64,000 bases of DNA from Saccostrea cucullata (GCF_032062105.1 NW_026939565.1:434001-498000); one strand, 5' to 3'; positions 35,850 through 47,216 are shown, numbered from the stretch's first letter. Made by a program: numbers and translations. The notes: a model not told the origin generated them from the sequence alone.

Positions 35850-37076
35850 TTAATTTTTTTTCTTTGCAGACAGATTTACAAATACTGCGCTGGACAAATG
35901 GACGTACATCGGTATATACATGTACATAAAAACTACCGGTATATATCCCCTTACCGCCGACTATAATACAGTAACAAAACAAAGATCATTATAAAGAAAC
36001 TATATTTATCTAATGCTGTATATGATTATTTTTATATGCGTATTAGAAATCTTATTGACATGTAAACGTCCATATTGAACATGTTGAACATGACAATTTT
36101 TTTTCCAAGGACATGAGTGTTTACTAATCAAAGATTTATATTGTGTTTTTCCATCATGAACACAACTTGTCCAGGACGTTAGAAAAAAAACAACTTTTGA
36201 TGATTTAGACTTCTTTCAAGTCCATCAAAATGATGTTTCAGTAAAAACATTTCTGAGAAACAACATCAAGGTGTCTTGTTTTGTACCTGGACAGGAAATC
36301 TTCTTGTCACATCGTCAGGCACATTGGTAATAAAAAAAACAACAACACAAAAAGTCCTCTTTAATACGGAATGCCTTGGTCAACGATAATTTCACGTTAC
36401 CCTAACAACGTGTAATATTTTTACATTGTTGGTTTTCCAGCTCTTAGAATTGAGACACTGAATAACACACTAAACGTTTGCTGTATATAAAACTAATATA
36501 TGCCCATAGTTGATGAATTAATTCTTCGACATTTAACATGACTTAGGTACATGTACATCAATAGCACGTATCAATATTACAGTACCTAACTCAAACTTGT
36601 GACACGCAAAATTTAATACAAAAACGTATACTAGTATCATAAATATCCATAATAGTTACTAAAATACCTTACATTTCAAAGATTTGTGTTTTTTTAAATG
36701 TCTAGTTTTACAACAAACAGAAATTTCCCATATTTCGGTTAGAAACTGTTTGCTTTCTTTTGGGGTCTAACAAATTAAAAACCTTGCTACAGACCGGAAA
36801 ATCCTGATCAAACACGAGAGAGAACAAGATGTTCTGCAATAAAGTGTTTAAACTATCACCTCAGGACCAATAGATTTGTGTTGTAACTCGCATTCTATGT
36901 CCGCAACGTTCTAAACCATTACTCATTACATTATTTTTCGTGTTTTCTACTAATGTTCGAGTGGGTTTCTTGCAAATTATACAACATCTCGAATCCCCGT
37001 TCCACGGCAGCCGTTTAAGCTAAACTATATAAACCGAAGCATCTCTTTTTCCTTTGATCCTTTATCGTTTTTTGCC

Positions 37077-37190
37077 ATGGAAACTTGGACCATTTACGTG
37101 TTGCAAACAGTTGCCTTGGTAGTGATCCTACTGGACACAGTCTACGGTCAGTCTAGAGATGACCCCTATACCTGGAACGATTACTGGTAA
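37077..37190 (+). CDS. Small secreted peptide precursor P1, 37 aa (METWTIYVLQTVALVVILLDTVYG|QSRDDPYTWNDYW)
   Basis: TATATAAA at 37026, Kozak GCCATGG, hydrophobic signal ending VYG, donor AAG|GTAAAG 3 nt after the stop, acceptor ACTTTCAG| at 37388, AATAAA at 37405. Confidence 0.75.
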   Translation: METWTIYVLQTVALVVILLDTVYGQSRDDPYTWNDYW

Positions 37191-37798
37191 AAGGTAAAGG
37201 ACGTAACAAGGGATGGTAAACAGGTGCTTAAAACGGTAAACGTTGTCACCAAAAGGTGCATATTGAGCAATTCTTTGCATGATACTAGATAAAAAAAAGC
37301 TTTATCTGGTTGAAAAAAGTTGGTACATGTATACGAGATTGCTGGCACCGCAGGCTTATTATTGTTTTGCATAATGCATGACTTTCAGGCAGTATAACAG
37401 CGACAATAAATTACTGCTATCAATTGACTTTCCTTTTATATAAAAATACTAGTAAGCAAAATCTATATGAAGACATATTTTGGGAAAACAGAAACATTTT
37501 CACAGAATTCCAAAGTCATCGTGTTAAGCAAAACAATTTGGACATTTTTAACTCCTTCAGACTTTAACCCACGACGAACAGAACGTGCAACATGCAAGGA
37601 AGTTATTAAAAATGTTTTTAGTTATTTCCTTCTTGTTTCAAATTTTCTTGTATTACAACCTCTAAAACATCCAGTGTAGTTCATTTTTTACGTTGTCTTG
37701 AACAATTTTGAGACTATATAAGCTACACCCAAACACTGGGTCTTCACTCGACGTTTTAACGCAGAGTCCTTCAATAGCAAGTAACTGCAGTATCCGAG

Positions 37799-37945
37799 AT
37801 GGAATCAGTTCGCCAGTTTCTCTACCAAACTGCAACCTTGGCTATGGTAGCCATGTTTCAGATGGCGCTTGCCCAGTACCAACCCGAACAGAACGGTGAT
37901 TTCCTGTACGGCAATTACAGATACCTGAACGGATACCGTTACTAA
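37799..37945 (+). CDS. Small secreted Tyr-rich peptide precursor P2, 48 aa (MESVRQFLYQTATLAMVAMFQMALA|QYQPEQNGDFLYGNYRYLNGYRY)
   Basis: TATATAAG at 37715, signal ending ALA, donor TAAG|GTAAGG; paralog P3 differs at many synonymous sites; candidate 3' UTR exon from 39744 with AATAAA at 39805. Confidence 0.85.
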   Translation: MESVRQFLYQTATLAMVAMFQMALAQYQPEQNGDFLYGNYRYLNGYRY

Positions 37946-38076
37946 GGTAAGGTGCGCGGACCCCCTAATACAGTTACTAAGGTAAGCTGCGCGAACCCCC
38001 TAATACCGTTACTATGAGCTAAGGTGCGCGAACCCCCTAATACCATTACTATAAGCTAAGGTGCACGAACCCCCTA
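37933..38076 (+). repeat. 4-copy 35-37 bp minisatellite spanning the P2 stop codon and splice donor
   Basis: Unit ATACCGTTACTAAGGTAAGGTGCGCGGACCCCCTA and three variants. Confidence 0.9.
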
Positions 38077-44607: not shown

Positions 44608-44757
44608 ATGGAATCAGTTTGTCAACTCGTCTACCAAGTTTCTGTCTTGGCTGTGGTTTCCATAATCCAAGCGGCGTATGCCCAGTACTGGGACGATCAG
44701 AACAACGGTGATTTCCTGTCCGAAAATTATAGATATCTCCAAGGATATCGTGTATAA
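44608..44757 (+). CDS. Small secreted peptide precursor P3, 49 aa (MESVCQLVYQVSVLAVVSIIQAAYA|QYWDDQNNGDFLSENYRYLQGYRV)
   Basis: TATA context TTTTGAGACTATATAAGCT identical to P2; Kozak GCCATGG; signal ending AYA; donor TAAG|GTAAGA; candidate 3' exon ~45128-45235 with AATAAA at 45215. Confidence 0.85.
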   Translation: MESVCQLVYQVSVLAVVSIIQAAYAQYWDDQNNGDFLSENYRYLQGYRV

Positions 44758-45394
44758 GGTAAGATGTTTAGCTTTTTTTAAAGTTTTATATATTTATGTC
44801 CTGGTGGAAAAAAAGAAATACAGAACATTTTCATTTGTTTCTAATAAATACACTTTGCGAAAAGAAGATACATGTAGTTCTATAACATCCAAAAATATAT
44901 TTTTTAGTCTGTGAATTTGATTTCTGATATTTGTTCATTATATGGCAAAAGTTAAATTTCTCAAAGAAAATTAAGCTTACCCCTGGAATTTTGGGTTTTT
45001 TAACAAGGGTCAAATCTGGTGTATCGGACATTTATCAAATACGTGGAAACATTTTTCGTTAGATCTGTTTTTAAAAACATGGATAAGGAAAGGTTATAAA
45101 ATTAACACCAAAAACATACGTTTCCAGCCATTATTGTCGCAGTTTATGACAAATGCTTCCACTGGAACATCACAAAAGACCTGTTTTTCTTTCGAATATA
45201 AAGGAACATTATCCTAATAAAACACACCGCGAATTTGTTAGGTTAGGATAAACATTTCCTGAAAATTCCTGAAAATAAAATAAAGGCACACACAGACTTC
45301 TATATAAAAACTTGGATATCCCCTATGAATCCCTGCCCTCTGCCTTAGTTAGTGCTGTAAAGCAGTGAGGAGACAAAGTGCTATTGAGAAAACT

Positions 45395-46385
45395 ATGCTT
45401 TATTACCTCGGTATTCTACTTGTGTTCCTGATATCTTTCATGGCTTTAACAATTAAGGCATCGTGGGACGAAGGATATTACTATCTGGCTAACACCGAAA
45501 ATGGTCTGATTCTCATTAAACTTCTTTTTTTTCAATTATTTCACTTTTTTGTATTTTTTATTTATACTGTTTCAATTAATTTTTTTTTTATTTATTCATT
45601 ATTTTGAGAGGTCGCTTTGAGACTTTGCCATTTATATGGCAAGCCAAATTCACAAACATGAGCTAAACATAGTTTCACAGTTGATAAACTAGGTTTATCG
45701 ACTGTAAACTATACCGTAAACTATAGTTAACAATTCGTTAACTATAGTTTTCATCTTTAAAACTATATTTAATGGTTGTTAACTATAGTTTACGAATACT
45801 AATCCAAGTTTATCTGTCTGAAATAAAACGTTAACAATAAATTTTGTTGATAAACATAGATTCACGTCTGTAAACTATAATTTACAATCGTGAACTATAG
45901 TTAAGAGTAATCATAGTTTCACAAATCGTGGAACTATATTTATCAGATCGTTAACTATAGTTAAGAGTTGTAAACCATAGTTTACAAATCATGAAACATT
46001 ATTTATCAGATAATCTATGTTTTGCAATCGCAAATGATTGTTTTGGTGTCAAGTATAGTTTACGGTTCTGAAACATAGATTATCGCGTTAACTATGGTTT
46101 ACAGATGTAAAACATAGATTAACGTTGTTAACTATAGCTTACAGTCCGTAAATTATAGTTTACAACCACAGGCACTTGTTTCGTATACGGGATACTAGTA
46201 CCCCCTACTAATAAATATAAGTAGGGGGTATCCCGTATACGAAATAAGTCCCTGTGTTAACTCATTTTTGTGAATTTGGCATGCCATACATTTACATGAA
46301 CTTGCACAACAATTGTAATCTTTTTTCAGGGTTTGACGACTGCTATTGGGCCGGTGACGAATGGAAATGTACAAATGAACACTAA
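45395..46385 (+). CDS. Small secreted two-Cys peptide precursor P4, 54 aa (MLYYLGILLVFLISFMALTIKA|SWDEGYYYLANTENGFDDCYWAGDEWKCTNEH)
   Basis: TATATAAA at 45301; exons 45395-45503 (donor G|GTCTGA, weak) and 46330-46385 (TTTTTTCAG|) join in phase 1; AATAAA at 46462. Confidence 0.7.
45635..46288. mobile_element. TATGG..CCATA MITE (same family as 31622, inverted) in the P4 intron
   Basis: TIR TATGGCAAGCCAAATTCACAAA; TSD CATTTA; carries a nested CACAGG..CCTGTG hairpin at 46167-46256. Confidence 0.85.
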
Positions 46386-47216
46386 TCAGCGAGCAGTTTT
46401 ATAATCAATTATCTATATTTATCAAACATTGTTCACGGCAAATGCTTTTGTTGTTCAAGACAATAAACAATTGGTCCTTCTAATTTTCTTTTTTAATGTT
46501 CTTGAAGGAGAATACAGGTTCTTGTGAATTCATGCCAAATATGTATGTAACTACGTCATATCCACTGTCCCTTTTAATGTCTTAATGTATGTAAAAAGAT
46601 GGCATCCTAGTATCTATACTTAACATTTTCCTCAACGGTAATGTTGATTTTTATAGAAAGTTTTGACATCCTATCGCAAAACTATCCATGTATTTTTAAC
46701 GTTTGTCCATACATGACAAGCACACAGTGTACCACATTCTTGACTTTGGATATGGTCATGTACCCCTCCATTCCGCCTGATCTCACAAGTGACTTTTTAG
46801 GTCAGGTCTGTGTTTGCTCTGCTCACAATTTGATTTGTCAATAATTTGCCACAATTTATTTTCGCCTTTCAGTGTGAACTCCATTAGCTTTCATACATCA
46901 TGTACCCTATACATAGAATCTCTATTCTAAATCTAGAAATTTGTTTCCATTAAGATTGAAAAAAATACATCAAGTAAGGTTTTTTTTTTTTTAAAAAAAA
47001 TATCCAATTCATTAAAGTCAAAATTTCAGTTATGTTTTTATTCAATATCATCATCAGCATGGTTGTTTGTATCACATGTTCTACAAGTACAAATATCTGC
47101 ACACACTAAGTAACCAAAACATGCACATATAAACCGTAAATCAAATTATTTTCTTAAAATGCAACTAAAACATCTGGCAAATTGAAAGACACATTGAGTA
47201 GTATGATAATTTCAAT

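Follow-up and report, generated by a model that had tools for sequence, protein, structure and literature searches.

We analysed a 64,000-nucleotide (nt) stretch of the Saccostrea cucullata genome (GCF_032062105.1, NW_026939565.1:434001-498000; hereafter the window), in which four very small genes, P1 to P4, had been predicted from the DNA to encode secreted, aromatic-rich peptides. Taken as a whole, the evidence makes it probable that P1-P4 belong to an oyster locus which is conserved but unannotated and lies in the interval from SPDL1 to the convergent gene that follows, and at which several promoters, each for a tiny secreted peptide, feed into a shared terminal exon. The components of this reading differ in strength: that P1-P4 are real translated genes is close to certain, and that the shared-exon architecture holds in this species is highly probable.

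In the arrangement that we propose, the ancestral unit would have consisted of three TATA-driven first exons, of P1, P2/3 and P4 type, followed by a single terminal exon, with each first exon encoding a cleavable signal peptide and a short acidic, aromatic-rich peptide. For P1 and P2/3 the peptide would be complete in exon 1, because a TAA stands 1-4 nt before the donor, and the terminal exon would supply a 3' untranslated region (UTR) and poly(A) site alone. The P4 first exon has no stop, and reading in phase 1 into the terminal exon would add a 10-residue disulfide loop to its product. In the lineage of the window, the part comprising P2/3 and the terminal exon would then have been duplicated, such that P2 is joined to an exon at 40044, and P3 and P4 to an exon at 46330. 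The design is unusually compact, with the stop at the edge of the exon and a terminal exon that is translated for one product but stays untranslated for the rest.

Conservation of the locus and its reading frames

We compared the window with contigs from two other oysters in the Logan collection, species B (L009-L011) and species C (L012-L021). In both, a P1 ortholog, a P2/3 ortholog, a P4-type first exon and one terminal exon coding for a Cys loop lie within ~2 kb, downstream of SPDL1 and with the same order and open reading frame (ORF) lengths as in the window. Exons of SPDL1 (Spindly) occupy 26609-28107 of the window and also lie upstream of the locus in species C, and a conserved minus-strand exon follows the locus at 47223-47444; the locus is therefore syntenic. 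A fourth species contributes one P2/3 protein of 49 amino acids (aa). The original prediction had pointed to related species as a place to look, and at the SPDL1-flanked interval of B and C the ORFs are indeed intact. The four ORFs, TATATAA boxes, signal-like starts and GT donors in the window lie where they had been placed, each box standing 51-97 nt ahead of its ORF, and this cross-species conservation backs them.

As a measure of how distinctive the arrangement is within the window, we scanned both strands for TATAWAA followed, at the first ATG 40-125 nt on, by an ORF that begins with hydrophobic residues and is 30 aa or longer. Among 129 TATA motifs in the 64 kb, the scan returned the four genes and one other site. 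No further paralogs were found in the 1.17-Gb assembly.

Synonymous and replacement changes were counted by the Nei-Gojobori method and compared by Fisher's test. For P2/3 in species B versus species C, there were 20 changes at 29.7 synonymous sites and 6 at 117.3 replacement sites (replacement-to-synonymous ratio, omega, ~0.03; p = 1.8e-12); 44 of 49 residues are identical. P1, whose orthologs in B and C are exactly 37 aa, gave omega values of 0.13-0.28 (p = 1e-5 to 4e-3), and P4 exon 1 gave ~0.35 (p ~0.01); the value for P4 exon 2, ~0.3, covers 17 codons and is too short for significance alone. Synonymous sites are near saturation between species, and the three lineages are therefore old. 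In species C every ORF is intact in the 10 contigs, and among ~200 samples the replacement variants of P2/3 are all singletons. The codon-position pattern, together with the intact ORFs in the population, rules out chance ORFs and a conserved non-coding element.

Database searches returned relatives of these proteins and nothing that has been named. An exhaustive profile search with P2 and P3 against 1.84 billion representatives gave one match, a 49-aa protein, and a word search with the resulting three-sequence profile added one protein of 49 aa and one of 50 aa. These orthologs are nameless and are known only as automatic gene calls on raw assemblies. Pfam-A, searched with seven precursors or exon products at E <=10, yielded as its best hit DUF5324 at chance level (E = 0.18, 11.9 bits against a cut-off of 27), and the ESM Atlas returned sub-threshold clusters of arthropod 'hypothetical' proteins, none informative. 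Word searches with P2 alone and with the unspliced P4-type ORF of species B gave no match, and JGI metagenomes, scanned with patterns made from the shared exon and from P2/3 exon 1, contained neither. An exact look-up of P1-P3 in a protein collection, in which records from the species' own genome are perhaps not included, found no match. Neither the peptide motifs nor the run accessions were found in literature text, and two surveys of oyster neuropeptides, supplements included, do not contain the sequences, presuming that species C is the surveyed oyster. With no Pfam family, named protein or paper text found to match them, P1-P4 appear new to description. The original prediction, which recognised none of the sequences and took them for unannotated, lineage-restricted tiny precursors, is borne out on both counts, there being conserved ORFs in other oysters and no described family in the profile, word, Pfam or literature searches. 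Micro-genes of 37-54 codons with mRNAs of ~350 nt slip past standard mollusc genome annotation, and with this locus a commercially and ecologically important group, whose peptide signals are poorly known, gains a family of three peptide types that is conserved among oysters and restricted to them.

The terminal exons and their splicing

Direct evidence for the proposed splicing of P2/3 comes from one RNA contig, L022 (run SRR21047125), found via a rare variant in the P2/3 protein cluster. In this contig, P2/3 exon 1 of species C (L012 up to 5344) continues past the TAA and one G and is then joined to the terminal exon (L012 from 6405-6407), omitting a 1.06-kb GT..AG interval that contains P4 exon 1. 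The contig ends in A's 17 nt past AATAAA, where the genome differs. It also bears an intronless coding sequence (CDS) for a 653-aa EF-hand protein (3-1961, minus strand; EF-hand pairs and an EFCAB10_C-like stretch), and because this CDS is uninterrupted we take L022 to be RNA-derived. The fusion of the EF-hand and P2/3 sequences is probably a chimera of k-mer assembly, not biology. The join and the A end indicate that a related oyster makes use, in vivo, of the stop-adjacent donor, the shared terminal exon and its poly(A) site. Further RNA contigs were sought via P1 variants and additional protein variants, and all those retrieved were genomic.

In the window, the exon at 40044 is homologous to that at 46330 over its full length, and both have their homolog in the one terminal exon that B and C possess. 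When the 46330 exon was slid along the entire window, its best non-self match was 40021-40260 (z ~9). Conservation of the terminal exon spans the polypyrimidine tract and AG to just beyond AATAAA, and the Cys-loop motif that it encodes, C-Y-W-[AT]-G-D-E-W-x-C, hardly varies. At the end of P4 exon 1 stands a weak phase-1 donor, AATG/GTCTGA (45503/45504), and the reading frame finds its continuation at 46330; the conserved phase-1 continuity into the Cys-loop frame implies that the two are spliced together. By homology with the species C transcript, P3 would be spliced to 46330 with P4 exon 1 skipped. Judged by sequence, P3 and P4 are then a single transcription unit with two promoters and a shared last exon.

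Another way to view the arrangement is from the 5' side of the junction. P2 and P3 are homologous over ~155 nt of promoter and 5' UTR and over the ORF, and the homology ends exactly at the donor. Across P2/3-type genes conservation begins in the promoter, with the TATA, the ATG and TAAGGTAA invariant, and collapses right after the donor: identity is 61-81% in coding sequence, 80-100% over the stop and donor, and 20-40% over the next 56 columns. Both donors, TAAG/GTAAGG in P2 and TAAG/GTAAGA in P3, are strong, as is that of P1 (AAG/GTAAAG). In all species the stop of P1 and P2/3 sits 1-4 nt 5' of the junction, leaving no constant protein part to come from the shared exon. By the established rule, a stop 1-4 nt before the last junction should not set off nonsense-mediated decay.

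We also observed a second GT exactly 10 nt 5' of the main donor, in phase 1, in four of four P2/3 genes (37933-37947, 44745-44759, L009 2269-2283 and L012 5331-5345). This upstream GT is a weak donor, and the TAA of P2/3 shares its frame with the ORF that encodes the Cys loop in the terminal exon. A minor long P2/3 isoform, arising by read-through of the stop or by use of the weak upstream donor, is conceivable; the sole spliced RNA contig uses the main donor.

The terminal exon of P2 offers what is in effect a natural experiment, in that the coding frame of this exon has decayed and its signals for splicing and polyadenylation have survived. The 40044 exon retains its acceptor, polypyrimidine tract and AATAAA, and these signals are as near to those of B and C as the signals of the P4 copy, or nearer. 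A 2-nt deletion disrupts the Cys-loop frame of the exon, and of the two Cys the second is missing. Decay of the loop frame with retention of the signals matches the expectation for an exon that serves as UTR only. P2 and its second exon are, as far as homology tells, a lineage-specific duplicate of the unit formed by P3 and the terminal exon, and the synonymous divergence (dS) of P2 and P3, 0.64, is below the between-species values. A decayed P4-type first exon within the P2 intron (39734-39826) was considered; it gave a tblastn E of 0.024 and a DNA-level rank of 139 among 2120 tiles, and is not demonstrable.

For P1, a stop followed by AG/GT is retained in all three species, and the best candidate for its acceptor is the shared-type exon at 40044. 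The original prediction had instead described four independent two-exon genes, each with an AATAAA exon of its own. This part stands for P2 (AATAAA at 40187) and P4 (46462) and falls for P1 (37405) and P3 (45216), whose sites lack conservation. At P1, B has a deletion of the site and C is polymorphic for it (AATAAA or AATACA). At P3, the site falls within the conserved promoter of P4 and neither B nor C has it, and between P3 and P4 there is no conserved candidate for a last exon belonging to P3.

The intervals between these exons hold several additional elements. An insertion of ~1.3 kb with long terminal inverted repeats, spotted by eye, lies inside the P2 intron (38340-39640, plus strand). 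Between the P2 and P3 units is an uninterrupted run of ~50 A (40739-40770, plus strand), which is possibly the tail of a retroposed element. The P3/P4 intron contains a repeat-rich insertion (45680-46262, plus strand), which includes 2.3 tandem copies of a 63-bp repeat (45872-46011) and, at ~46160-46262, a hairpin that is almost perfect; it is absent from B and C, whose P4 introns are 190 and 367 nt.

Predicted peptides and their possible roles

Signal peptides were judged by their hydrophobic core and the (-3,-1) rule, a hand-made heuristic and not SignalP. By this heuristic, each of the 11 precursors begins with a 10-residue n-region, followed by a hydrophobic core (KD9 2.1-3.5) and then a small-x-small site that is conserved, and Gln occupies position +1 of the predicted cleavage site in eight of eight P1 and P2/3 sequences from four species. 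Both the shared signal scaffold of P1-P3, which takes the form ME[ST]...Q10...small-x-small/Q, and the exposure of an N-terminal Gln by cleavage had been anticipated in the original prediction, as had the want of classical processing sites: KR, RR and KK occur in none of the precursors, their single Arg residues lie within the conserved peptide, and there is no C-terminal amidation Gly, the ORFs ending in W, Y, V, N, F, S or H.

Secretion after signal cleavage is likely. P1 is predicted to comprise a signal at residues 1-24 and a mature peptide of 13 aa that begins with Gln and is acidic and rich in Trp and Tyr; P2 would comprise a signal at 1-25 and a 23-aa peptide that also starts with Gln. 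The predicted mature peptides have a net charge of -0.2 to -4.2 at pH 7, a pI of 4.0-6.1 and 15-31% aromatic residues, and those of P1, P2/3 and P4 have in common an acidic pair at about positions 4-5. We infer that the products are secreted peptides of 13, 23-24 and 32 residues, bearing an N-terminal pyroglutamate in P1-P3 and one disulfide in P4. In these forms their calculated monoisotopic masses would be 1727.69 Da for P1, 2903.29 for P2, 3025.33 for P3 and 3878.48 for P4.

As to what such peptides do, we tentatively favour, while giving it somewhat less than an even chance, a role as extracellular ligands, hormone- or pheromone-like, as opposed to a material or a weapon. We favour it because the very low omega, the invariant small ring and the lack of cationic character suggest specific binding, and these features fit a ligand better than an arms-race weapon. 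A more elaborate version, which is a long shot, is an oyster-specific signalling cassette in which three promoters of one 2-kb unit would deliver three peptides (pyroglutamate-P1, pyroglutamate-P2/3 and disulfide-looped P4) that act between individuals or gametes as, for example, conspecific settlement, spawning or gamete cues. Early work on the waterborne settlement cue of oysters described it no further than as a small peptide ending in Arg; if P2/3 were cut in tryptic fashion, fragments ending in G-Y-R and in N-R would result.

A serious rival, which we nonetheless consider unlikely, is that the peptides are building material, either cross-linked through 3,4-dihydroxyphenylalanine (DOPA) or acidic and mineral-binding, for the cement of larvae, the periostracum or the shell matrix. 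Aromatic residues make up ~30% of the C-terminal half of P2/3, in which Y-R-Y, N-R-Y and G-Y recur after an Asp-rich start. Mussel foot protein 3 has a similar composition, as do prism proteins rich in Gly and Tyr and flanked by Asp, and TATA promoters with very short mRNAs would suit high-output secretory cells. However, the peptides are very short and have no repeats, the P1 of species B is without any Tyr, and the near-identity of P2/3 (44/49) between species whose synonymous sites are saturated exceeds what is usual for low-complexity matrix proteins. The invariant Cys loop of P4 resembles a binding epitope, and no sequence match to matrix or adhesive proteins was found by profile, word or Pfam search.

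It is very improbable that the peptides are defence effectors, antimicrobial or anti-parasite, of a family with conserved signals and variable peptides. The tiny precursors, the tandem duplication and a signal conserved at least as much as the mature part would all suit such a family, and the original prediction had likened the cluster to the layout of toxins and antimicrobials. That likeness fails, in that whole ORFs are under purifying selection, with every pair at an omega of 0.03-0.47 and none showing diversifying selection (omega of at least 1) on the mature peptide. The mature peptides are acidic to neutral, lacking the net positive charge and amphipathic design of cationic antimicrobials, and there has been only one lineage-specific duplication, with no other copies in the genome. 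Least probable of all, the hydrophobic N-terminus might stay uncleaved, making these single-pass membrane micropeptides whose short acidic aromatic tail meets membrane partners, either intracellularly or on the cell surface. Conservation of the 'signal' equals that of the tail and extends to polar Q6, Y9, Q10 and Q21 in P2/3, but the core is only 9-10 residues between polar residues, too short to span a membrane, and in every species P1 and P2/3 have, at a matching position, a canonical small-x-small site followed by an invariant Gln.

Several observations weigh against a conserved multi-promoter locus encoding secreted ligands. The donors of P4 are weak in all three versions (GTCTGA, GTCGGC and GTGCGA), and the only spliced contig, which has a chimeric 5' end, stems from a different species and concerns P2/3 alone; the P1 acceptor and the P4 splice are deduced from the reading frame and from conservation. 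Of the words sampled from 37000-40300, 5-10% occur in 12 candidate RNA runs; this share fits mRNAs of 170-330 nt and could equally reflect the repeat in the P2 intron. The n-regions of the predicted signals carry a Glu at position 2. Finally, the comparison of the paralogs P2 and P3 is weak, with an omega of 0.47 (p = 0.04), and one of the two copies may be relaxing.

Features, neighbours and comparison with known systems

The features of the locus are collected in Table 1.

Table 1. Elements of the P1-P4 locus, in window coordinates.
Feature	Position	Strand	Remarks
P1 TATA box	37026-37032	+	promoter block kept in B and C from ~36950; ACTATATAAACC invariant
P1 CDS	37077-37190	+	37 aa; TAA 37188-37190
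P1 splice donor	37191-37199	+	AAG/GTAAAG, GT at 37194
P2 promoter and 5' UTR	37645-37798	+	TATA 37715; conserved GAGACTATATAA; likely start region GGTCTTCACTC
P2 CDS	37799-37945	+	48 aa; TAA, one G, donor GT at 37947
P2 intron	37947-40043	+	GT..AG, 2097 nt; holds inverted-repeat element
P2 terminal exon	40044-40215	+	predicted 3' UTR only; AATAAA 40187; paralog of exon 46330
P3 promoter and 5' UTR	44443-44607	+	TATA 44511; homologous to that of P2
P3 CDS	44608-44757	+	49 aa; TAA, then G, donor GT at 44759
P4 promoter	45130-45307	+	conserved blocks 45130-45151 and 45221-45262; TATA 45301
P4 first exon	45395-45503	+	~22-residue predicted signal and N-terminal half of peptide (contains DEG)
Shared terminal exon	46330-46490	+	46330-46385 codes P4 C-terminal Cys loop, stop 46383-46385; AATAAA 46462; predicted 3' UTR for P3

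On the upstream side, an AATAAA at 36838 (within 36830-36870, plus strand) lies in a block kept in B, ~190 nt before the P1 TATA, and is probably the poly(A) site of the SPDL1 gene. Downstream, the minus-strand exons 47217-47396 and 50425-50550 are kept in B and C. The second holds HQIRTH...PLLGDHKY, which we take to resemble an RluA-type pseudouridine synthase motif and which would fit RPUSD4; Pfam searches with the short exons of this neighbour gave no match and so no confirmation. Further along, an uninterrupted ORF of 373 aa (56738-57859, plus strand) contains all four FANCL domains (UBC-like d1-d3 and the C-terminal RING) and is an intronless FANCL gene or retrogene, and a 467-aa ORF (53584-54987, minus strand) without a Pfam match may be a transposon or an orphan gene.

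In its architecture the locus is most nearly analogous to variable-first-exon loci, and in function its closest analogues would be minimal precursors of peptide hormones or pheromones. Like UGT1A and the clustered protocadherins, it would join several first exons, each with its own promoter, to one common exon. Sequence conservation speaks for the separate promoters, in that distinct TATA boxes and their flanking blocks are kept in three species, and the common exon is indicated by the RNA contig for P2/3 of species C and by reading-frame continuity for P4. Unlike those loci, it is on a scale of ~2 kb with a single shared exon, a stop of their own closes two of its three types of first exon, and the shared exon would code for one product and form the 3' UTR of the others.

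Among peptide precursors, those of mollusc neuropeptides and hormones of the CCK/sulfakinin and allatostatin-C/somatostatin types have in common with P1-P4 a signal peptide (here a predicted one), a likely pyroglutamate, acidic residues by Tyr, a small disulfide ring (here in P4) and strong purifying selection on the peptide. Unlike classical neuropeptide precursors, those described here have no propeptide, no mono- or dibasic sites and no amidation Gly, consisting of signal and peptide alone. With the conotoxin, frog-skin-peptide and antimicrobial-peptide superfamilies they have in common tiny precursors, a signal scaffold with diverged mature parts (P1 versus P2/3) and tandem duplication, but differ in being under purifying selection, in lacking a Cys framework in P1-P3 and in the anionic character of the peptides. 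Mussel foot protein 3 and the Gly/Tyr-rich shell-matrix proteins are likewise small secreted products, with a richness in Tyr, Gly, Asn and Arg that is also found in the C-terminal half of P2/3. Compared with these proteins, to which it has no detectable sequence relation, P2/3 is much shorter, has an acidic N-terminal half, and is conserved in its sequence and not just in its composition.

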